Source of the DNA: Podarcis bocagei
Taxonomy: Eukaryota
DNA length: 64,000 nucleotides
NCBI GenBank assembly: GCA_964188305.1
Contig: OZ076885.1
Reading direction: 5' to 3' (one strand)
The translations under genes were made by a program, and so were the position numbers. This document shows, one piece after another, positions 1,105 through 39,300 of this stretch. How positions within the stretch are numbered: position 1 is the stretch's first letter; every line of letters begins with the position of its first letter. The notes beneath the pieces were generated by a model that searched no databases, was not told the origin of the DNA, and saw nothing but the letters and a program-made list of their open reading frames with translations.

Positions 1105-4100
1105 GTAAGATTAACCTACATAAAATGTATATTATTTGTCTCTTGTTGTGGAGTCCTCTAACGTTGCCCACTACTAAGGATGTAAAAGATTCACTGTTGA
1201 TTATGATTGCTTTGTGAAGATAAAGAAGAATCTCTCAAAGTACACAGAGATATTAGAGACTTTGTCTCCTTTGCCAATCTAGATATTCCCTGTACTTGTG
1301 CCTGAATGGTAGTGAACACCCCACTTTTATTCCTTATACACCTCTCACTATGTCCCAATTTTTCAATGGGTACAGCTTTTCAGCGGAATGCTGTTGTTTC
1401 AAACACAGTTTTCCTCAGCACACCTAGTGGCTTCTTTTTTTGCTGTTAGGACTCTCCCTGCAACAGTGACTTTTACTTCTTTCCTTTACAATTTAGGTCA
1501 CCCACTTGCTTGACAATGAAGGGACAGTTCTCTTCGCAATATTCATGGCTGTCTGGGGTAAGCTTTAGCATAGGTTGATCTAGAACCTGTTCTAAGTTTT
1601 ATGACAAATTCTCTTCTTAAAATGTATGCAATATTCAACACAGATGTGGCTAAAGTGTATTTTTGCATCTAAGAATGAAATGTAACTCTAGAACAGTGTT
1701 TTTCAACCACTGTTCCGCGGCACACTACTGTGCCGCGAGATGTTGCCTGGTGTGCCGTGGGAAAAATTAAAAAGATTTTTTTTTTTGTAAAAGTCAAATT
1801 AGGTCCTAATCTATCCCTCGAGCGCCCCTTGTCCGTTATTGTGACGTATGAAGCGTGTTCCCGCCCACTCCCCGCCCTCCCTTGCTTCTCTCTCTCTCTC
1901 TGTGGCGCTTTCCGCCGCTTCCTGCTGTGCATGCGCAGCTTGCCTCGCGCTTCCGTTCCGGCCCCTCCTTCCCCCGACTACCCCGCCGCTCCGTTCCTTT
2001 CTCTTTCTCGCGTGTCAGAGAGCGGTGGCGCGAGCGCGGCGGTTCCCTCAGGGCTGACGGAGGGCTCGAGGAGGAGGAGGCAGGACGTGGAGGCGGAGAA
2101 AGCGGCGGCGGCCACCCCCCACCTCCGGCTCCAGGCCCGTGTAGAAAGCTGAGGGGGAGAGATAGATAGAGGTGGGCGGCGGCGGCGGCGGCGACCAACC
2201 GCCACAGTAGTTGTAGCGGCGGCAACGGCGAGCAGGGACTCCCGCTCTCTCTCCGTCGTGTCTCTCTCTCTCTCTCCCGGGCCCGTCCGTTGAGTCTCCC
2301 GCGCGCCTCGGCTACAAGATGAGCATCGAGATCCCACCGAGTCTGACTGAGCTGCTGCAGGGCTACACGGTGGAGGTGCTGCGGCACCGGCCGCCGGACC
2401 TGCTGGCCTTCGCCGCCGAGTACTTCACCAAGCCCCGCTCTCCTTCCTGCCTCGCTTTGCTGCCTCCTTCCCCCCCACCCCCAAAGCTTGGAGGTTCCCC
2501 GGCGCTGACCCGCAGGTTTGACCCCCTTCTCACACCTGTTCGCGCTCCTTGCACGGAATGGGGCGGATGGGGAGGAACGGGGCTCGCCGCTGCCTCCGCT
2601 CGCCCTCCCCCCTCCCCCCTCCGCCGGCGGTCCCGAGAGTCTTGGCTTTTTGGCGGTTGGCACAGAAGGAAGGCAAGGGGGAGGGGAAAAAATTGAAACT
2701 TACACTTTCGTGCGTCCCTCCCGGCGTGACGCTGCGCGCTGACGTCACGGGGCTGTAATGGTGGTGTGCCTCGAGATTTTTTTCATAAAACAAGTGTGCC
2801 TTTGCCCAAAAAAGGTTGGGAAACACTGCTCTAGAAAACACATAAATGTTAGTTGATATAATATAGATCCTTCGGGGTCCTTCTGAGATTAATTTCATCA
2901 TGATTCATACTCTGAAAGGCCCTTTGTTTAGATCTTCTCTCTGGAATTGCTGGATTTATTTCAAGCTATCTTTCTCTTATTTCCTGCACACTATAAAGCT
3001 GACTGGCCTATAGTTGAGTGGAGGGACCCCTGTAAGAAGAAAGACAGGATGATTTTGTTATCCTGTATATATTCAATTCTGTGTTTTGATTCTAAATTTA
3101 TAGCCACTGTATTCTTGGAGTTGTGGAAGAGAAGGAGAGCTGATGTTGTCAGTCACTGGAAGTTGTATCTGTGGGATGAAGAAGAGGTAAGGTTAACTCT
3201 TTCATATAGCCATCTTTATATATATGTTCACTGTGGCAGTCCTACTCTTGTTCTGAACAGGAAGAAATGTATTTACTGCTGCCCATGGGTGTGAGGAAAA
3301 TCTCTTCAGGTTTGGGTCCTGCCCTTTGGACTTGATATGATTTCAAGGGTCATGATCTTCACCTGCAGGGCATCAGTACCTTTTGTTATATCAGCGACCA
3401 ATTATTGGTGGCACTGACTTGAGCCCAACTTTCCAATCATTTTGCCATTGCGCTTTGGCTCCTGGGAGACCTCTGCTCTGCATCATCACCAAGGAATCAT
3501 GCCTCAAGCCTTCCAGCATCTTCATGTTCACAAAACAGCATTTCTACCATAGATATATCTTTAGGGAGCCACTGTGGAGTCTGGATATTTAGTTTGGGAA
3601 CAACTTCCTGGAGAGCTCTTAGACAATACTGGGCTAGACTCAGTATTAGACAACTTGGTTTATCACTAACTGATGTCAAGAAGACTACTTTAAAAATAAA
3701 TAAACTGTTAACAGGGGCCATGGTGACCCATGTTGGGAGTGTAGATTTTGGCAAAGTTTATTAAAAATAGCTCAAAAACTTTTTAAAAACTGCAAAAAAA
3801 AATAATGCTCAACAACTTTTGTTTTCCGGATTTTCACTTTTTGAAATACGGCAACCCTAACCTGGGTGTATCTCAGTTTTGACAGAAAAAGTTTCCCAGT
3901 AGACCCTGCAGATAATTTGGCACAGATGGCTAAAATAGTTTCATATTCAGGTCAGAATGGATACGGAAGTCCTAAAGAGTCATAATTCTGCCAGGGGATC
4001 TCAGTAGTAGCTGGAGTATTTCCCTCCTCAACTTGTTCAGAGGTTGGGGTTGAGGGTATTTCAGCCATTTTGTGAGGGGTCTTGCAAACAGGCAAGGTCA

Positions 4101-7100
4101 GGGCCAAACATGGCAGTAGTGGCAATCTGACTTCACATTGTTGTTAGATATTGTGGTTTTGTTTGTTTTTTAAACCTACAAAATGCCAGTGTGAAGGAGG
4201 AAACATTGTCTTCACTTTAATTCTGGTTTCAGTCATCATCATCTCATTGGATGCAGGCGTCATCACAGTCAAATTGAAATAAGGGCAATGGTTTCTCTCT
4301 CCATACTAGCATCTTGCACCCAGCATCAGCAGCAAATGTGATTGTTGCTGCTGCCAGAATCACAAAACAGGTGAGCCGTGAGGGATGGTGTTCATGAAAT
4401 ATTTTAACCCATGGCTCCTCTTGTGAGCCAAAGAAGTTATGAATTCTAAGGACCTGTCAGTGTGGCTGTATTTCTGTTTCTAGGAGGAACTGGCTATGGA
4501 ACTCATCAATAACCCAGAAATGGCTTCCCCACTGCACCAGCATTCTTACATCCGCAGCACTGTTGTGCTCATCTTAGTTGGGCTTATGGTATGTGGTTAC
4601 TATTTTTGTAGTGCACTTCTGGTATGCATTTTAAATGTTGGTTTGTGTATGGTGAATGAATGAATGAACTTTATTACGGTCAAAGACCAGGATAAAACAA
4701 CAACAACATATAAATAAAAAAGCAGTTAGGATTTATTTTTTTTAACTGATAAATGTTGGAGCAAATAAGGACAAAGAAACAAGCATAGGATAATAATAAT
4801 AATAATAAATTTTATTTGTATCCCGCCCTCCCCAGCTAAGCCGGGCTCAGGGCGGCTAACAACAATCAAATAAACAATCAAATAATAACACATTCTAAAA
4901 ATATTTCATTATAAAAATTAGTTAAAATCAAGTTGATGGCAACCGATTAAACAAAATTCTGTGCAGGTTGCCAGAGGAGGGGGTCAGGCTGCGCCCTGAC
5001 CAAAGGCCTGGCGGAACAACTCTGTCTTGCAGGCCCTGCGGAAAGATGTCAGGTCCCGCAGGGCCCTAGTCTCTTGTGACAGAGCATTCCACCAGGTTGG
5101 AGCTGCAGCCGAGAAGGCCCTGGCTCTAGTTGAGGCCAGCCTAACCTCTCTGAGGCCTGGGACCTTGAGGGTGTTCTTATTTGCAGACCGTAGGTTTCTC
5201 TGTGGGGCATACCAGGAGAGGCGGTCCCGTAGGTACGAGGGTCCTAGGCCGTATAGGGCTTTAAAGGTTAAAACCAGCACCTTAAACCTGATCCTGTACT
5301 CCACCGGGAGCCAGTGCAGCTGGTATAGTACTGGTTGAATGTGATCTCGCAGCGAAGACCCCGTAAGGAGTCTCGCCGCGGCATTCTGCACCCGCTGGAG
5401 TTTCTGGGTCAGTCTCAAGGGCAGCCCCACGTAGAGCGAGTTACAATAATCCAGTCTGGAGGTGACCGTCGCATGGATCACAGTGGCTAGGTCAGGGCGA
5501 GAGAGATAAGGGCCAACTGCTTAGCTTGGCGGAGATGGAAAAATGCCGCCTTTGTTATAGCTGTAATCTGCGCCTCCATAGAGAGGGAGGTATCGAAGAT
5601 TACACCCAAACTCTTAACGGACGGTGCTGGCACTAATTGCACCCTCGCAAGAGATGGGAGTTGCCCCCTCGATCCCATATCGTCCCGCCCCAGCCAGAGG
5701 ACCTCTGTCTTCGAAGGATTTAACTTCAACCGGCTCCCACGTAACCATCCAGCCACAGCTTCCAGACATCTGGTCAGTGTGTCTGGGGCCGAGTTAGGAT
5801 GGCCATCCATCAACAGATAGAGTTGGGTGTCATCAGCATACTGATGGCAACCCAGCCCAAAACTCCGGACAAGCTGGGCGAGGGGGCGCATAAAGATGTT
5901 AAAAAGCATCGGGGAGAGAATCGCACCCTGAGGCACTCCACACACCAAGGAGTGACGCGATGACAATTCCCCCCCAAGCGCCACCCTCTGTCCCCGATCA
6001 GAGAGAAACGAGCGCAGCCATTGAAGGACTGTGCCCTGGATCCCCACGTCGGCAAGGCGGTGGTCCAGGAGTTCGTGATCGACCATGTCAAAGGCTGCTG
6101 ACAGGTCTAGAAGAATCAGCAGCCCCGACCCGCCTCGATCCAGCTGTCTGCGGAGATCATCTGTTAGGGCGACCAGAGCCGTCTCGGTCCCATGGCCAGC
6201 ACGGAAGCCGGACTGGAATGGATCCAAAGCAGATGTTTCATCCAGGAACCTACCAAGCTGTTCAGCAACCGCTCTCTCAATCACCTTACCCAGGAATGGA
6301 AGATTCGAGACCGGGCGGTAATTGGATAGATCTAAAGGATCTAATGATGTTTTCTTTAAGAGCGGACGCACCACCGCCTCCTTCAGTTCCCCTGGGAATA
6401 TCCCGGTGCCAAGGGACAAATTGATGATATCCCCCAGGGGGGCCCGCACCTCGTCTGGACACGCTCTAATCAGCCATGACGGGCACGGGTCAAGAGGACA
6501 GGTGGTGGGCTTTCCAGCTTGGAGGAATCTGTCCACATCGGCTGGAGATATCCGGTCAAAGTGGTCCAATACTGGACCCGAGGACAGTCGAGGGGCCTCC
6601 AGTTCCTTTATTGTATCCAAATTGGCAGGGGGGTCATGGCGGAGCAACAGGACCTTCTCCGCAAAAAAGCTCGCAAATGCCTCACAGCTGTGTGTCAGAT
6701 TGTTATTTAAATTTGGCTGTCCTTCAAGGGACGTTAAAGACCGAATTATACTAAATAATTGCGCCGGGCGAGAGCTAGCGGATGCAATGGAGGCCGAGAA
6801 GTAAGACTTCTTAGCGGCCTTCACTGCCATCTCATAGGTTTTCTGACTAAAATACAAGATTAAACACGGATAATGGATGGATAAAAACTGATAATCAAAA
6901 CAGATAAGAACTAAAAACAAATGAAAACATGCAGTTAAAACAACTGTAAGAACTTAAGAACTAAAAGACTTGCAGTTAAAGCAACTATAAGAGGCTGCAG
7001 AGTAGAAGCCTCTGAAATAGATGACACTCACAGCATTAGAAACTGATGTGCAAATATGTTTTAAACAGACAATTAAAACAATGTACAACAATAAATTTAG

Positions 7101-22648: not shown

Positions 22649-22826
22649 ACATAAGAACATAGCAAGCTGCCTTATATTGAGTCAGACAATTGGTCCATGT
22701 AGCTTAGTATTGTCTACACTGACTGGCAACAGCTCTCCAGGATTTCACACATGGAGTTTTTCCCAGCCCTAAATGAAGATTGAACCTGGGACCTTCTGTA
22801 TGCAAGACAGATGCTCTCCAACTGAG
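22649..22826 (-). mobile_element. tRNA-derived squamate SINE (Squam3-like)
   Basis: Minus strand: ctcagttggagagcatctg...ggtcccaggttcaatc (A/B boxes)...ggcagcttgctatgttcttatgt tail. Confidence 0.7.
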
Positions 22827-23175
22827 TCCTGGAAGTGGAGCCAACTATAACTGATCTCTTATTTTTGTAAAATGTGTGTGATGTTTTTGTTAAGTTGTAC
22901 CGAGTTCTGAAAAATAAAATAAAAAGGATATTAAAAAACATAATTCTTCAGCGATTATAGGCAGTGCTAATATGAAGTGGGACACTACACCTTGAAAGTC
23001 CCCTCGTTACATTATTGTTTTTATTTTTCTAAGAGCATGCATGTATAGACTACAGCTTTCCCATACACTCCTATTTTGCTTTCTTTCCTTCACCACCCCT
23101 GGCCCCAATGTATTAACTTTGAAAACTTCAATTTGGCAATGTGCCTTCTGAATGACAAAAAACTAGAGTCTAGCT

Positions 23176-23477: not shown

Positions 23478-24901
23478 TTTATTTATATCCCGCCCTCCCC
23501 AGCCGAGCCAGGCTCAGGGCGGCTAACAACAATCAAATAAACAATCAAATAATCACACATTCTAAAAATATTTCATTATAAAAAATTAGTTAAAATCAAA
23601 TTGATGGCAACCGATTAAGCAAAATTCTGTGCAGGTTGCCAGAGGAGGGAGTCAGGCTGCGCCCTGACCAAAGGCCTGGCGGAACAACTCTGTCTTGCAG
23701 GCCCTGCGGAAAGATGTCAGGTCCCGCAGGGCCCTAGTCTCTTGTGACAGAGCATTCCACCAGATTGGAGCCGCAGCCGAGAAGGCCCTGGCTCTAGTTG
23801 AGGCCAGCCTAACCTCTCTGAGGCCTGGGACCTTGAGGATGTTATTATTTGCAGACCGTAGGTTTCTCTGTGGGGCATACCAGGAGAGGCGGTCCCGTAG
23901 GTACGAGGGTCCTAGGCCGTATAGGGCTTTAAAGGTTAAAACCAGCACCTTAAACCTGATCCTGTACTCCACCGGGAGCCAGTGCAGCTGGTATAGTACC
24001 GGATGAATGTGATCTCGCAGCGAAGACCCCATAAGGAGTCTCGCCGCGGCATTCTGCACCCGCTGGAGTTTCTGGGTCAGTCTCAAGGGCAGCCCCACGT
24101 AGAGCGAGTTACAATAATCCAGTCTGGAGGTGACCGTCGCATGGATCACAGTGGCTAGGTCGGGGCGAGAGAGGTAGGAGCCAACTGCTTAGCTTGACGG
24201 AGATGGAAAAATGCCGCCTTTGTTATAGCTGTAATCTGCGCCTCCATAGAGAGGGAGGTATCGAAGATTACACCCAAACTCTTAACGGACGGTGCTGGCA
24301 CTAATTGCACCCCCGCAAGAGATGGGAGTTGCCCCCTCGATCCCATATCGTCCCGCCCCAGCCAGAGGACCTCTGTCTTCGAAGGATTTAACTTCAACTG
24401 GCTCCCACGTAACCATCCAGCCACAGCTTCCAGACATCTGGTCAGTGTGTCTGGGGCCGAGTTAGGATGGCCATCCATCAACAGATAGAGTTGGGTGTCA
24501 TCAGCATACTGATGGCAACCCAGCCCAAAACTCCGGACAAGCTGGGCGAGGGGGCGCATAAAGATGTTAAAAAGCATCGGGGAGAGAATCGCACCCTGAG
24601 GCAGTCCACACACCAAGGAGTGACGCAATGACAATTCCCCCCCCAAGCGCCACCCTCTGTCCCCGATCAGAGAGAAATGAGCGCAGCCATTGAAGGACTG
24701 TGCCCTGGATCCCCATGTCGGCAAGGCGGTGGTCCAGGAGTTCGTGATCGACCATGTCAAAGGCTGCTGACAGATCTAGAAGAATCAGCAGCCCCGACCC
24801 GCCTCGATCCAGCTGCCTGCAGAGAAAATATAGTCCGGCCCACCACATGGTCTGAGGGATGGTGGACCGGCCCACGGCTGGAAAAGGTTTGCTGACCCCT
24901 G
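23176..24901. mobile_element. hAT MITE split by an L2 insertion
   Basis: Ends caggggtaaacaacc and ggtttgctgacccctg; TSD gtctagct/gtctagat; uninterrupted relative at ~39169-39418. Confidence 0.8.
23430..24824 (-). mobile_element. Young 5'-truncated L2 LINE, same subfamily as 4791-6843
   Basis: Near-identical to 4791-6155; (TTA)n tail; possible aaaata TSD. Confidence 0.92.
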
Positions 24902-32135: not shown

Positions 32136-33222
32136 TGCTTGACATAGATCAGGTACCTCTTACTGTTACACACTAAAAACTTGCCTGCCATTCATATAGT
32201 CATTGTGGTTAAGGATTACTTGCTTATATGGGACAGCAGCTTTGATCAGGTAATGATTCTGAATACAACTTTGGGGAGCCTAGTGGTTATTCCATGTTTC
32301 ATGTTTAGGTTTCTGAAAGCTTCTCTGTAATTGGAGAGTTGTTCCTCTTTTATGCATTTTCTTTCACATCTGAACTGTATATTAGCTGCACTTCATGATC
32401 AGAATTATGAGTAGCCCTGAGTGTGTATTTTATGCTACATTTAAAAAGAAAACAGCAGCACATCTTTTACAGATTAAAAAAGAGAATTCAGCTCTACTAG
32501 TATTGTTTTTCAGTTCAGTAATAGAACTTACACACATGGTGTAGCTGTCAGGTTTGGTCTTGTCTTGAGATCTAACATTTTCCCTTTGCCTGAAAGCAGG
32601 CCTCCTTGGTGTATTTTCCTTGTTTACTCCTTAGGGGGGTTCTTGTTTACTCCTTGGGGCATTTTCATGTTTATAGTCCACAGCAGTCTTTGCCAGGATC
32701 CAGGATAACCGGCTGGCTTAGTGCCATAGAGCGGCTATCCTCACAGCTGCAGAGCTTTTGAGCAACCTGCCTCCTGGCTCTTTACTGAGCAAACTCTTGG
32801 TCGGCTGTTTTGCTGCCAACACGCTGGGTGGGTTTGTTGATTTTAAGAGTCCAGGTTTCATTTTCTCCTTGTATGCAGGTGGAAAGGTGGGTGGAGCAAT
32901 GATAGCAGGTGGGAGGAACTGGCTGTCCCGAGTGCAGGCCTGGAAGATTGTGATTGGGGGTGGAGAATAGAACAAGTCATTTAAGGAGGACATGGAATGA
33001 ACAAACAAAAAAAAGCAGAGGGAGATACTTAACTGGCAAAGCCAGTCTGTTGGCCAGTCATGTGATTAACATGGCTACGATCAGGGAGTGCACAGCAAGG
33101 ACACACAAGGAGTCTCAGGATTTGAAGGTGGCTGCCTGAATCTCAAAGAGGGAAGTCCATAAAGGTAATTATTTCCCCTGTGCTTTTCCATTTTGTAGGA
33201 TGCTGCTTGTGAATTAGCTAAA

Positions 33223-33322
33223 ATGACTGTGAAATTGCTCTCTCTTCTGCCTGTGCCATCTGTGCTCTTGGCTTTCTGCCTTGCCACAAGGAGTGAGCAG
33301 GAAAGGACAGCAGCTTTACAAG
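33223..33322 (+). CDS. SIGIRR: SIGIRR putative first coding (signal peptide) exon, [33 protein letters not shown]
   Basis: Pyrimidine-tract acceptor at 33197-33198, ATG with A at -3, hydrophobic leader, AAG|gtgaga donor in phase 1 matching the 43948 acceptor. Confidence 0.65.
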
Positions 33323-36300
33323 GTGAGACTAAAAGAAAAAGTTGTCCTGGTGTGGTTTGTGTGTTTTATGAATATATGTAGGCTTGTGGTACTTAGCAAT
33401 TAAGGCAGTCTGCCCCACTGTTTTTTCTTCTCTGTGCCCTTCTTGCTTGACCTGATCAGGCCTCCTGCCTTTACAGTCACTTGTGCTTCAACCACTAATC
33501 TCTCTTCTGTGTTTGGATATCTCTTTCTGGAGGAGACACACTTTATTTATGAGACAATATGAGTATTTTGAGAGAAGATTTGAAACTTCTTACATGGCAG
33601 GCCTATTTCCATTGTTGTTTCTGTTTGGCACAGTGGCCTTTCCTAGGCCTTGCTTCCCAATTTGAAATTAGTTTTCCATTGTTGTTTTTTTGGTCAGTGA
33701 GATTTGTGTGCGTGCGTTTGTATTTAACACTTGCTATCTGATCATAGGGGTGTCCTATGTTTTCCATTTGTTCTTGAGGCCTCATTGAATTCCATTTTCC
33801 CATGACACACATTGCCAGGTTCCTGTAGGCTTCACATCAGCTCACTGATGCTTGATATGGCTGGCTTCTGCCCTGTGAGGGCTTATTATTATTATTATTT
33901 CAGTAGTCAACATTTGTCTATCCATCATTCTCTTTGCCTTCTGCTTAACATTTGCTGTGGGGGTGCATGGAGCTTTAGGAGAGAATGAAAAGTGCATCCA
34001 CTGTTCTTCTGACCTATATAATCCAGTCTTACTCTGGCCTCTGCCCATGCTGGCCCTGCAGCCAGTGGAACTTTGGAGAAAAAAATGGGCTATTCTTCTC
34101 TGGGAACACAGGATGCTGGCTAGTCAGTTGCATTCTAAGGGGTGGCTTAGTACAGCAACATAGTCTTCCTATTGGCTGATCAAATCCTAAGTTTATATGC
34201 TGACCAGCTATGTGGTGTTTATTTGTTTTCTGTTTTTCATTTGCATTACTCTTGGCTGCCTTGGACATATGTAGAAGGAAGTGGAATACAGTTTTTTAAA
34301 AAGAAATTAATTAGTAATGGCCAACTTGTAGGGATCTTCAAAATATGTGAGTGTGCTACTCTATATTGCATTACAGTACCTGTGCAAACTGTGTGTGTTA
34401 GGCTACCAGTGGCTTTCCCTCTAGTCCAGTGTTTCCCAAACTTTTTTGGGCAACGGCACACCTGTTTACTGAAAAAAAATCTCGCGGCACACCACCATTA
34501 AAGCCCCGCCCCGTGACGTCAGCGCGCAGCGTCACGCCGGGAGGGACACACGAAAGTGAAAGTTTTTTCCCTCCCCCCTCAGTCCCTCGCTCGGGTGCAA
34601 AGCGCCTGCTTTTCACGCAAAAGGTCGCTGGTTCAATCCGCGGAGCCTGCCTGCAACCCTGGAGAGCAGCTGCCGGTCCGTGTAGGCAATCCTGAGTGAG
34701 ATGGACCACTGGTTCAGTATTAAGTATTCTATGCTATCCTATGTAAATACGGATTTAGCCTCGGTTTGCTCTGGCTTTGAAGCTAAAGGTTAAAGGGGGG
34801 GGGCAGAGAGACGTGTAGACCCGTTTGCGTAGGTCCCCAGTGTTTCCCCATGGGGTCCCAAGGAAGAGCGGCGCCACCCGATTGGATTTCCTAAACTCCC
34901 GCCCTGAGCGCTGGAGTTCCGCGTAACCCAAATTAAACCCGGTTGCTTACACTCTGTCCAGGAGGACGCACAATCCCCGCTTGACGGATGGGTCTGTTCC
35001 AAGGCTGGCTCCGCTGGCAAAGCCGGCTTGCTGGACGCCTCTTGGCAGGGAGAGAAGCGGACGGACGAGTTTTAAGAGGCTCTCCGTCGCTCCAGAAGAA
35101 GGCAGGGCGAAGATTTCAAGGGGCATTGCTCCGGCTGCTCCCTCTCCCGCCGCGCAGGAGCGATGCCTCTCTCTGGCTCTTCCTCCGCGCAGGCTGAGGG
35201 AGGGAGGGAGGTGCGCGTGTGACCCGTCTCTGCTGGGAGACCAAACCCAGCGAGGCAGAGTCGCGCGGAGGCGCCCAGGCAGCGCTGCCGGCTGCGAGGA
35301 GGAGCGCCAGGCAGCAGCAGGAGGCGCGGCCTCTCCTCGCCGCCGCCGCCCCGCCTCTCGCCGCCCGACTCGCCCGCCTCCCTCCAGGCATCTCGCGGCA
35401 CACCAGCCGATGTCTCACGGCACACTCGTGTGCCGCGGAACACCGGTTGGGAAACACTGCTCTAGTCTTCTAATCTCTGGAGTAGGTGTCATTGCAGTGC
35501 TGAAGAGACAGGCAAGAATATACATTTGATTTTGCCTTAGTCGGGCCTATAAATCCTTAGCTTCTAGTCCAGAAGTGCCATAGACTCATTCTGCCTTTGC
35601 CACTGTGATGTTTGTGCCACAGCTGATTACTATGGGGTTAAATTTAGTATGTGGTGGGGCAATGAAACACTAGGTTAGCCATACATGGAACTGACACATT
35701 TATTCCCATAATTAGTGTTTTCAAATGACCATATAAATAAATAGTTGAACTGTCGTTGTAGGAAGTGAGCAGATTTATCTCAGTGTCACAGATATCTGCA
35801 TACAAGATTTTTACTTCCTTATGATTTATTTTTGATGTGGCTCACAAAATGATCAGGCAGTGCACGATGAAGAAACTCTACTGTGATCCTTCTAGATTTA
35901 ACTTGCTATCCCTATGTATTGGTAAAATAGCTTTGTTAGTACAGAGATGAAGTACTCTTTCGTAACACATCCTACTACAAAGGTAAGGATGCTAACCTTC
36001 CATTTCCATCGATTGACAATGGGGACACAACCTGCATCTCTTATTAAGTTGTATGCTTAAGTAGGGTTGTGTTGGTATCCGTCTGTCTTGGGAGACAATA
36101 GACGAGTGTGCCTTTGGGAGTGAAGTCAAGCTGTTGGAGAGTTACAGTGTCTGCAGTGGTTCCAGAAACATATACAGGAGAGATATGTTTTCTTGCAGGT
36201 GGAGCAGAAGAAGGCATCTGGTTTTGCTGCTAAAGTTACACCATGGTGTTTCTTTTTTCTGTGCTCATACATTCTGTGCTCATACTGTGGTCATTCCTCT

Positions 36301-39300
36301 GGTTACTGACTGACTGTCTCCAGACACTGTGATTGCCTGCAAAGGGTTCCCACATGGTGGGGTTAATGTTGCCAGCCTTCATATCACATTTGCAGACATC
36401 TTTGTAACACAGTCTGCCAACAGACCTAGTTTACTATTATTTTTTAAATTTATATACTACTCTTCATCCAAAGACAATAGGCCAGCTTACAACATAAAAA
36501 CACAAAATACACAGCATAATAATAATAATACCCCTTTCTGTTATTCATTCATTTATCCCATACTTCCAGTGCATTTCCCCATGACTTTCCAAACCGCAGA
36601 AAGCCTGATTCTTTTTTAAAGTGGATTTGTTGAGCTAGTGCAACAGAGCCTTTCAATCCAATTTAATGGCTCAGACCTAAGTTTCCGATGTGCTCTTGAA
36701 TCCCACTTGCAAAATAGTGACTGTCTGGAGGCACCCTTAGGCAATTTATGCTTGCCTAATTGAAACTACAACATAAGATGATGTGGGGTGCAACATTTTG
36801 ATGTTTTTAGAGGCATTTTTCTTCTTCTGAAATATGATTTGTCTCTTAAATTCCCTGAGTATCCATCATGAGTAGTGCAGAAATCTTTATACATGTTGCC
36901 CAAGAGGATAAAAGATACAATATTGCCTTGGTCTAACCTCTTAAAACAATGGCTATTTTAATTTTCTGCCTCATAGAGGGAGTCTTAAAGCTATAAGTTG
37001 GTTAGAAATTGAGATAATCCTTATCTTTCTCTGCCCCTCCCAGTTATATGGGTTTGTGTGTGCCTGCTGTGATCCTGGGAAAAGCACTGGCAAAGTCAAT
37101 ACGATAACATTCCTGTCTGTAGGACCAATAAATAAGCCATAATCTTTGAGTTTTACATAGAGGTGCCTTTTCAGTTATTGCTGTTGCAACAGACCAACCT
37201 AATCTGCTTTTATTGATAATGCTTTTGTATAAATTGACCACACCTTGCAAAGAAGCAAACTGGCTAGAAAATGTGTGTGTCATGGTGGGGGGAGTGAGAG
37301 AGTGAGCTTGGGAGTTTGCTCAGCCAGTAATAGGTGTCAGTATCTTCAAAGGGACGCGGGTGGCACTGTGGGTAAAAGTCTCAGTGCCTAGGGCTTGCAG
37401 ATCGAAAGGTCGGCAGTTCGAATCCCCGCGGCAGGGTGCACTCCCGTTGCTCGGTCCTAGCGCCTGCCAACCTAGCAGTTCGAAAGCACCCCCTGGTGCA
37501 AGTAGATAAATAGGGACCGCTTACAAGCGGGAAGGTAAACGGCCAGAGCAGCGATGTCACGCTGGCCATGTGACCCGGAAGTGTCTCCGGACAGCGCTGG
37601 CCCCCGGCCTCTTGAGTGAGATGGGCGCACAACCCTAGAGTCTGGCAAGACTGGCCCGTATGGGCAGGGGTACCTTTACCTTTACCTTTTTATCTTCAAT
37701 GTATGCTGTTTGTTGTGACATTTCTTTGTGTCTTCTCTGTATACTGGGAGAACCCTTGAGTGCCTCCCAGACCATTTACAGACACATTTACACAGTTTTC
37801 TTTTCATTTAGCGCTATATTTGTGTTAGCCTTTGCAAAGGGATAGCCATGCTGACATTCACTTATAGAAACAGGACTGAATGTGTACTCCAGTGCAAGCC
37901 TGGTTGGGACAAAATGCCAAATTGTGGTTTGTTTAAAATAAAGAAAGGAGGAAGGAAATGGATCTGTGTGGCTCATACTTATGCTGCCAACCCATGCTTG
38001 GGCATTATGTCTGAACCAGTCCTAGGGGTGTGACAACAAATCAAAATTATTTGAGGCCATTTACACTGCACCTTAGTTTTGCTTTAACCACATTATTCTG
38101 TGCAGTTTTGCAGGGAAGCATTTTGCACAGCAGTTACTGGTTTTAAGTTTATTGTGGCAATTACATAATGAAGGAGATAATTGATTCTCCCTTCCAGACT
38201 CTTTTTATGATGATGTGAAACCCGTTTACCATCTTGCAGGGATGCACGCTTTGTTGTTTGTAAGTTGAAGCCTGCCATATTTGTTAATGAAATAGGTGAT
38301 GTTTAGGGTTGGTATAACTGCCCTGAGGCATTTTGCTGCCTGAGAGGGTCAGGATGACTTCCCCACTCCCCTTCCATGTACAGAAGCTGACTCTGGCAAC
38401 GAGACAGCATCCTTCACCACACCTGAAGGCATCAGCATGCCCAGGACAGGCCATATGGCACATAGAGTTCTGTCTTTCAACACTTCGTTACTCCTCGCCC
38501 TAATTGGGTCATTGCCAACACGGATAGATGCTGCTGTGCAGCAGCATGTGTTGCATGGGCATGTGCTAAAGTTTCTGGACTGTGTGGCTTATGCTTGTTG
38601 CCTCTTTGCAATGCATACTTCTTCAGTCTGGGGCTTTCCTGTACTGTGACGTGTTGAAAGAAAGTGACTAGGTGAGACATATAGCCATACTAGGCCAGCA
38701 ACAAGCAGGCTTACTGGCACAGGAGGGTAGAAATGGCCAGGAGACTTAGGGGGAACATCCAAGGTGGCGTCATTACCACCTGAGACAATTGCCTCATTCT
38801 GTAATGATAGGGTTGCCCCTGCAAAAAGCAAAGGCTCTCCCTATCATTATTTGTTTAGTTAGCTGCCTGTGGCTTGGATCCTAAGCACAGTTTCTTGGAG
38901 GTACGTTTCAAAATTGGTAGGATTTGCTTCCAAGTAATAAGATGCATAAAAGTGAGGTGCCAGATTACTACAGTTCTAGCAGATGAGTTTCCTTACTCCT
39001 TAAATTAAATATATCTACTACAGTGCAGTAAGGTATTGATTATCTGATTAAGCCCTTTAACTCATCAGAAATGTGAGAAAATAGTCGATAGAGCAGAAGA
39101 CTCTTTAATCTCAGTGTCATAGATTCAAGCCCCACACTGGGCAAAAAGATTCCTGCATTGCAGTGGGTTGGAGTCAGCAAACTTTTTCAGCAGGGGGCCG
39201 GTCCACTGTCCCTCAGACCTTGTGGGGAGCCGGACTATATTTTTTTTTGGAGGAAAGAACAAATTCCTATGCCCCACAAATAATCCAGAGCTGCATTTTA

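Follow-up and report, generated by a model that had tools for sequence, protein, structure and literature searches.

A 64,000-nucleotide (nt) stretch of DNA from the lizard Podarcis bocagei (contig OZ076885.1, assembly GCA_964188305.1; hereafter the window) carries a 1,033-base-pair (bp) transposon at 34427-35459, called copy 2 here, which is probably a very recent non-autonomous hAT element of a family of ~10^3-10^4 copies, with an interior that is an inherited mosaic and not a fresh capture. A related element, copy 1, lies elsewhere in the same window. A preliminary description of the window had proposed that copy 2 picked up "entirely different cargo" from that of copy 1. This is not supported: the interior of copy 2 consists of a family module and of a unit that occurs in 6-15 copies in species in which the copy 2 insertion is absent.

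Results

Copy 2 is flanked on both sides by perfect 8-bp target duplications, CTCTAGTC, and terminates in near-perfect 15-bp inverted ends, CAGTGTTTCCCAAAC and CAGTGTTTCCCAACC, of the general form CAGTGTTTCCCAA(A/C)C. Searching the window for the inverted end with up to three mismatches returned nine matches against 2.1 expected, and with up to two mismatches only the four ends of copies 1 and 2. The heptamer GGCACAC is found 15 times in the 64 kb, nine of these inside the four arms of the two copies. In a blastn search of the whole window the single relative of copy 2 is copy 1, matching at the arms only: 34427-34579 is the reverse complement of 2676-2828 (85.5% over 159 bp, expect value (E) 1e-47), and 35396-35459 that of 1694-1757 (82.8% over 64 bp, E 8e-13). 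The preliminary description had noted these reverse-complementary arms with their subterminal repeats, as well as a perfect 8-mer duplication of copy 2 different from the CTCTAGAA of copy 1, and is upheld on both points.

Duplications of 8 bp are characteristic of the hAT superfamily, as are short inverted ends starting CAG/YARNG with subterminal repeats, and copy 2 displays all of these. Moreover, CTCTAGTC and CTCTAGAA agree with the Charlie-like target preference nTCTAGAn, a comparison of two sites only. Judged by its 8-bp duplication of an nTCTAGnn target, its CAGTG... ends and its subterminal repeats, copy 2 is classified as a non-autonomous, Charlie-like hAT. Helitron-type capture, for which the absence of inverted ends and of an 8-bp target duplication, 5'-TC...CTRR-3' ends and insertion between A and T would be typical, does not fit an element with inverted ends and an 8-bp target duplication. 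No transposase was found in copy 2 or anywhere in the window, where the sole enzyme open reading frames (ORFs) are reverse transcriptases of long interspersed elements (LINEs). These LINE ORFs (Pfam RVT_1) lie on the minus strand at 5487-6920 (E 4e-37) and 24155-24760 (E 1e-16).

Logan contigs of four public runs were aligned to 33000-36800: X1 from organism A, which is an exact match to the window, X2 from organism B, X9 from organism G, and the RNA run X15. Contigs of X1 span both junctions of copy 2 with zero differences. One contig each of organism B (3,433 nt) and organism G (2,252 nt) passes from 34418 directly to 35460. These empty sites are precise: copy 2 plus one 8-mer is missing, one target copy is left, and there is no excision footprint. 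The flanks of the site diverge by ~0.4% between A and B and by ~2.1% between A and G. Because copy 2 is present in A yet precisely absent in B and G, it is a real, recent transposition, younger than a very shallow (0.4%) species split. In line with this, both words sampled from a 60-nt sequence spanning the left junction occurred only in the sample of organism A, an indication that is weak with two words sampled. One of two sampled junction/arm words is also found in run X25, labelled 'moss metagenome', which may reflect lizard contamination or chance. The family had been described as young and mobile, and the empty site in two congeners agrees with that description.

The youth of the insertion also accounts for its intact CpGs. 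Copy 2 has an observed/expected ratio of CpG of 0.87 and copy 1 one of 0.91, compared with 0.05-0.23 for the sequence flanking copy 2 and 0.30 window-wide, and the dense CpG reported earlier is thus real. However, the CpGs of copy 2 are intact because the insertion is very young; youth alone suffices as an explanation.

The interior of copy 2 is a mosaic of three parts (Table 1): a GC-rich module beside the short arm, a 5'-truncated short interspersed element (SINE) and a low-copy block of ~370 bp between them. The SINE piece had been recognised before; its alignment to 22650-22830 includes the B box GGTTCAATC. Searches of copy 2 with Rfam and ARAGORN gave nothing relevant, and no intact tRNA was called by ARAGORN. 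The promoter-like ATTGG and GC-box motifs that had been pointed out are present in the middle block, as ATTGG at 34881-34885 and CCCGCCC at 34898-34904. The same block contains at 34838-34848 the 11-mer CAGTGTTTCCC, identical to the start of the inverted end and oriented in the same way as the left end, with no extended arm-like similarity around it (z 2.7). Other copies have a 6-nt insertion, TTAGAA, after 34828, just upstream of this 11-mer.

The depth of the middle block relative to single copy is ~6x in X1, ~6-16x in X2 and ~15x in X9. SINE and middle block are contiguous on multi-copy contigs of organisms B and G, the two species without the copy 2 insertion; these contigs cover 34589-35149 and so reach from the middle block 30 nt into the GC-rich block. 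Since the SINE and middle block stand together on multi-copy contigs in B and G, this unit is older than the insertion, and it constitutes a subfamily unit of 6-15 copies that predates copy 2. To the left of the SINE, the 1,514-nt contig of organism G that bears 34589-35149 (~15x) extends by another 946 nt, and a further contig in organism A by 2,243 nt; the sequence of both extensions is unlike the arm.

Towards the short arm the picture changes from a small subfamily to the family at large. Bin depths of the GC-rich module climb from 8.3k over 51k to 378k in X1, and 13 X1 contigs follow copy 2 outward from 35326 and share a common, different sequence inward of it (agreement 0.98). The segment 35120-35395 is a family module with ~10^2-10^4 members and not a private cargo. 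Hence, of the GCC-rich 5' untranslated region (UTR) proposed for this position, the GC-rich block itself stands (74.6% G+C), and its reading as cargo specific to copy 2 does not. A second form of the element is documented by a ~175x contig that joins 34594 to 35120 via 14 nt, AATTCAGCTCGTTT, with a depth of 6,556 in X1, 1,480 in X2 and 63 in X15. This ~175-copy subfamily equals copy 2 minus 34595-35119 (525 bp, i.e. the SINE and the ~370-bp block), with the 14 nt in their place. Copy 2 itself is no miniature inverted-repeat transposable element (MITE), a class of less than ~800 bp with high copy number and a homogeneous non-coding interior, as it measures 1,033 bp and has a rare interior; the short form of ~520 bp, deduced from the 34594-35120 joint, would qualify as one. 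Taken together, copy 2 is derived from a small subfamily that is older and has a longer interior, and no promoter was picked up by copy 2 itself.

For the ORFs of the copy 2 interior we found no Pfam domain, no credible homologue, and no coding exon or parental locus. An ATG ORF of 59 amino acids (34950-35126, minus strand) was considered as a first exon and discarded, its single match being a repetitive artefact protein. Over 34733-35355 the RNA contigs of organism G reach a depth of 75-136, compared with 3-4 in the flanks, and an RNA/DNA ratio above that of the arms. These unstranded contigs must stem from other copies and report transcription of this type of sequence, not promoter activity.

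The family is abundant, as had been supposed. The summed word depth of the arms is 217,000-378,000 against 37 in the flanks in X1, 85,000-144,000 against 10 in X2 and 30,000-67,000 against 13 in X9. Summed contig word depth is a rough proxy and not a copy number, to be read as an order of magnitude only; with this proviso the arms amount to roughly 10^3-10^4 single-copy equivalents per genome in the three species. What the family members have in common is limited to ~150 bp at one terminus and ~65-135 bp at the opposite one. Each arm boundary shows several distinct continuations among the loose ends listed, with 1,930 more beyond those, which agrees with the earlier claim of many different interiors. 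Consensus loose ends fall at 34565/34577 and at 35326, and the family modules comprise 35120-35395 and the continuation TTGCCGGGGAACCTCC... The long arms of both copies contain a perfect cAMP response element (CRE) palindrome, TGACGTCA, at 34514-34521 in copy 2 and 2740-2747 in copy 1, within a 39-nt block (34511-34549) that is identical in the two copies, and in copy 2 a GC box lies just upstream. Every family member would carry one such promoter-like module in its long arm.

Two contigs of X1 join a right end of the family to a left end with exactly 8 nt in between (...CACTG + TCCTAAA + C CAGTG... and ...CACTG C + AT + TAGTC CAGTG...), at ~0.4x single-copy depth. They may be head-to-tail pairs that share one target duplication, formed by re-insertion into an earlier target or by alternative transposition. 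Used as protein queries for other family members, inward-reading and interior ORFs of copy 2 gave zero matches, and when contigs of metagenomes, viruses and prokaryote genomes were scanned for exact matches to the arm and inverted-end motifs there were none either. A literature search (this inverted end, Pack-hAT in squamates, Podarcis hAT) returned no description of the family in lizards; its coverage was incomplete and this is not proof of novelty.

Evidence for capture of host DNA by the family comes from copy 1. The interiors of copies 1 and 2 are without similarity in Smith-Waterman comparisons against shuffled controls (z at most 3.1), just as had been stated. The interior of copy 1 contains a CpG-rich upstream region, codons 1-38 of PRKAR2A (2319-2432), a remnant of a family module and ~167 bp of filler (2506-2672). 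Residues 1-38 of the ATG ORF that starts at 2319 are the docking/dimerisation domain of the type II regulatory subunit of protein kinase A (Pfam RIIa, E 1.1e-14; RII-alpha docking domain in the PDB, E 5e-15). The module remnant, 2478-2505, matches at 24 of 28 positions the loose-end consensus for the continuation most often seen next to the long arm, and this consensus matches copy 1 also at 2666-2695. As copy 1 keeps this remnant, its cargo occupies the slot, within ~20 bp of 34577, at which copy 2 departs from the majority form.

A protein search with the copy 1 ORF yielded as its five best matches five short "RIIa domain-containing" models of Podarcis muralis (P0002-P0006, UniProt). Together with copy 1, all five leave the true gene at one breakpoint, ...FAAEYF(A/T)K followed by PRSPS, where true squamate PRKAR2A continues RLRDARDQE...FDGEPMQTESNGEEE. 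P0002 is collinear with copy 1 through the ~167-bp filler into the long arm, and the remaining models have a common 5'UTR followed by four different tails. On two contigs of other squamates (L001, L002) that contain PRKAR2A exon 1, the match to copy 1 is limited to 2319-2429. Because the five P. muralis models share the breakpoint of copy 1, these sequence comparisons indicate a single capture of PRKAR2A, after which the fragment spread to no fewer than five or six loci and came to be used in annotated transcripts. The models start in the captured 5'UTR/exon and end in different tails or in the arm (1852-2739 in the window), a pattern suggestive of exonisation and of chimeric transcripts arising at the dispersed copies. 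The proposal that cargo of this family derives from the host and is dispersed is thereby borne out for at least this one case.

Table 1. Coordinates of copy 2, its component parts and copy 1 in the window; depths are summed word depths in X1.
Feature	Positions	Strand	Evidence and remarks
Copy 1	1694..2828	+	opposite orientation to copy 2; target duplications CTCTAGAA at 1686-1693 and 2829-2836
Left target-site duplication, CTCTAGTC	34419..34426		direct reading; single 8-mer joins 34418 to 35468 in organisms B and G
Long arm, common across the family	34427..34577	+	blastn; depth 217k-305k vs 37 in flanks; inverted end CAGTGTTTCCCAAAC at 34427-34441, two GGCACAC, GC box, CRE palindrome
Linker TCAGTCCCTCGCTCGGG	34578..34594	+	common to ~175-copy subfamily; last 6 nt overlap the start of SINE homology
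Sauria-type tRNA-derived SINE	34589..34750	+	aligned to minus-strand SINE 22650-22830; ~10 nt missing at 5' end; depth ~5.7k
Low-copy middle block, host origin possible	34751..35119		58% G+C, CpG observed/expected 0.78; ATTGG, CCCGCCC, inverted-end-like 11-mer
GC-rich family module	35120..35395		74.6% G+C; shared by progressively more family members towards element end
Short arm	35396..35459	-	blastn; depth ~326k; inverted end CAGTGTTTCCCAACC at 35445-35459 (minus strand), three GGCACAC/GTGTGCC
Right target-site duplication, CTCTAGTC	35460..35467		direct reading

Discussion

In maize Ac/Ds, non-autonomous hATs arise via interrupted repair, which creates internal deletions with filler at short homologies while the termini and subterminal repeats are kept. 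For the lizard family we propose a related scheme. A hAT transposase acting in trans would recognise the 15-bp inverted ends and the GGCACAC repeats and move copy 2, cutting at the inverted ends and pasting the element into nTCTAGnn sites with duplication of 8 bp. The gap left by excision would be repaired from a sister copy; interrupted gap synthesis, or template switching during replication at short G/C-rich microhomologies, could then generate internal deletions and filler DNA, and each new variant keeping both arms could be amplified by transposition. We infer this to be the most likely origin of the interiors from abortive gap repair in Ac/Ds and from models for animal elements of the Pack-TIR type (TIR, terminal inverted repeat). 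Several features would fit the model, although they do not prove it: breakpoints are clustered beside both arms, the ~175-copy form has its 14-nt filler, the linker/SINE junction of copy 2 shows the 6-nt overlap CTCGGG, and copy 1 contains the ~167-bp filler. In copy 1 this process would account for the 5' end of host PRKAR2A, which was demonstrably imported.

How the interior of copy 2 came about can also be viewed differently. Copy 2 might be a Ds-like deletion derivative whose SINE, middle block and GC-rich block all stem from a longer, possibly autonomous hAT, perhaps with a nested SINE insertion, the transposase having been lost and no host DNA captured. The ~15x contig of 1,514 nt in organism G, which extends 946 nt to the left, and the contig in organism A that reaches 2,243 nt left of the SINE are both in favour of such a progenitor, as are the joint of middle block and GC-rich module, which is identical across the long forms, and the gradual fall in depth from the short arm inward, as nested deletions predict. 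Autonomous hATs in Anolis, moreover, typically have 5-25 copies (PMC3014272, Table 1). Yet the retained interior of copy 2 holds nothing transposase-like and contains a SINE, and copy 1 demonstrates that the same family does import host DNA; on balance we regard a deletion derivative of this kind as somewhat unlikely, though well worth bearing in mind. Far less probable is that the interior is a host CpG-island promoter (~34865-34925) and 5'UTR (35130-35385), captured as one unit in one of many independent captures. CpG richness with CCAAT and GC-box motifs, the RNA contigs of organism G over 34733-35355 with their RNA/DNA depth ratio above that of the arms, and the true first-exon capture in copy 1 would all suit this idea. 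However, the supposed 5'UTR is found in ~10^2-10^4 members and the supposed promoter in 6-15 copies in species without copy 2, so that copy 2 did not capture them; no start-codon exon, homologue or parental locus was found for the interior, and so young an element would keep its CpG anyway. Practically negligible, finally, is the notion of chance similarity or an assembly artefact. The nTCTAGnn preference does make target duplications partly alike, but the arms match at E 1e-47 and 8e-13, and an artefact is refuted by independent contigs across both junctions and by precise empty sites in two species.

We therefore retain the reading of copy 2 as a recent hAT insertion with an inherited mosaic interior. 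Several points weigh against it. Neither a transposase nor an autonomous partner was seen, the window ORFs offering only LINE reverse transcriptase. The joints give no order between the form of copy 2 and the ~175-copy short form, and in view of the leftward extensions of 946 nt (X9) and 2,243 nt (X1) the middle block may be part of a progenitor that was longer and perhaps even autonomous. The microhomology CTCGGG at 34589-34594 is suggestive only, and word depth is a rough proxy of copy number which low complexity of the GC-rich sequence may inflate at 35286-35395.

With respect to Pack-type elements, copy 2 shows inverted ends and a target duplication without a transposase ORF, as its ORFs contain no Pfam domain. 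A host-derived interior is seen in copy 1 at the protein level (PRKAR2A codons 1-38), while the searches with copy 2 turned up neither an exon nor a homologue or parent. Mobilisation is seen for both interiors, the copy 2 unit being present at 6-15x in three species, with the insertion of copy 2 itself a new one, and the copy 1 cargo in five P. muralis models that have one breakpoint in common and differ downstream of it. A Pack-type reading is thus supported for the family, via copy 1, and unproven for copy 2, where the middle block may be of host origin. Whether Podarcis-like lacertids host an active or very recently active hAT family that forms a prolific vertebrate Pack-type system is, to our mind, evenly balanced. 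Such a family would repeatedly swap its interiors for host CpG-island, promoter or first-exon DNA and spread to new loci including introns, and into transcripts and gene models, on a scale comparable to bat Helitrons and far above known animal Pack-TIRs.

The lizard family shares conserved ends and swapped host-gene fragments with the Pack-MULEs of rice and other plants, which differ in belonging to the Mutator superfamily and to another kingdom and in having 9-bp target duplications and long inverted ends. Pack-MULEs reportedly favour GC-rich 5' ends of genes, and chimeric transcripts are said to occur. Unlike the lizard interiors, which are largely unrelated between copies, Ds elements mostly retain Ac-derived sequence. 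Closer to hand are the animal Pack-TIRs, of which 370 were reported in 100 genomes, 208 of them hAT and only four multicopy, at a few copies apiece (Tan et al. 2021, PMC8277862). The sole lizard in that survey, anoCar2, had 0 Pack-TIRs among 77 TIR elements (PMC8277862, supplementary file 4). Multicopy animal Pack-TIRs prefer GC-rich DNA, and template switching at microhomology followed by transposition has been proposed as their origin (PMC8277862). Pack-TIRs, or Pack-hATs, resemble the lizard family in their inverted ends, target duplications, missing transposase and non-transposon interior; in contrast, the lizard family runs to thousands of copies with many interiors, and one captured exon is found at 5-6 loci or more, the parental host locus of copy 2 being only putative.

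Among lizards, hATs of Anolis carolinensis have NTCTAGAN target duplications and CAGTGRTTCCCAAA / CAGTGGTTCCCAACCT ends (hAT-HT3, hAT-N3) (Novick et al. 2011, PMC3014272). The target duplications found here match NTCTAGAN, a likeness to the hAT-HT families that is drawn from descriptions of duplications and ends only, not from sequence. In Anolis, non-autonomous hAT/hobo elements take up foreign DNA, SINEs among it, and belong to young families, whereas capture of a host promoter or coding first exon is not reported there (PMC3014272). The Helibat Helitrons of vespertilionid bats prefer promoters, 5'UTRs and first exons, which they have amplified to thousands, and are lineage-specific and recently active (Thomas et al. 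2014, PMC4224331). As vertebrate transposons that bring promoters and first exons to high copy number, they are comparable to what is proposed for the lizard family; unlike it, they transpose by rolling circle, have neither inverted ends nor 8-bp target duplications and capture DNA by another mechanism.

Cut-and-paste transposons that capture gene fragments are well documented in plants and reported as rare and almost always single-copy in animals. The lizard family would be a natural vertebrate system in which to study the mechanism of capture, its preference for particular DNA, and any rewiring of genes by dispersed promoter- or CpG-rich modules, the captured first exon of PRKAR2A now being part of several annotated gene models. 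Since what appeared to be private cargo is largely a family module, catalogues of cargo need to be built on a family consensus and not on pairs of copies.

Surroundings of the element

Copy 2 probably lies in an intron. RNA contigs of organism G cover 33000-33253 at a depth of 27-41, compared with 0-4 in the neighbouring bins. On the other side, 36048-36800 is a further interspersed repeat, at ~10^2-10^3x single-copy depth and with many internal length variants among the contigs.

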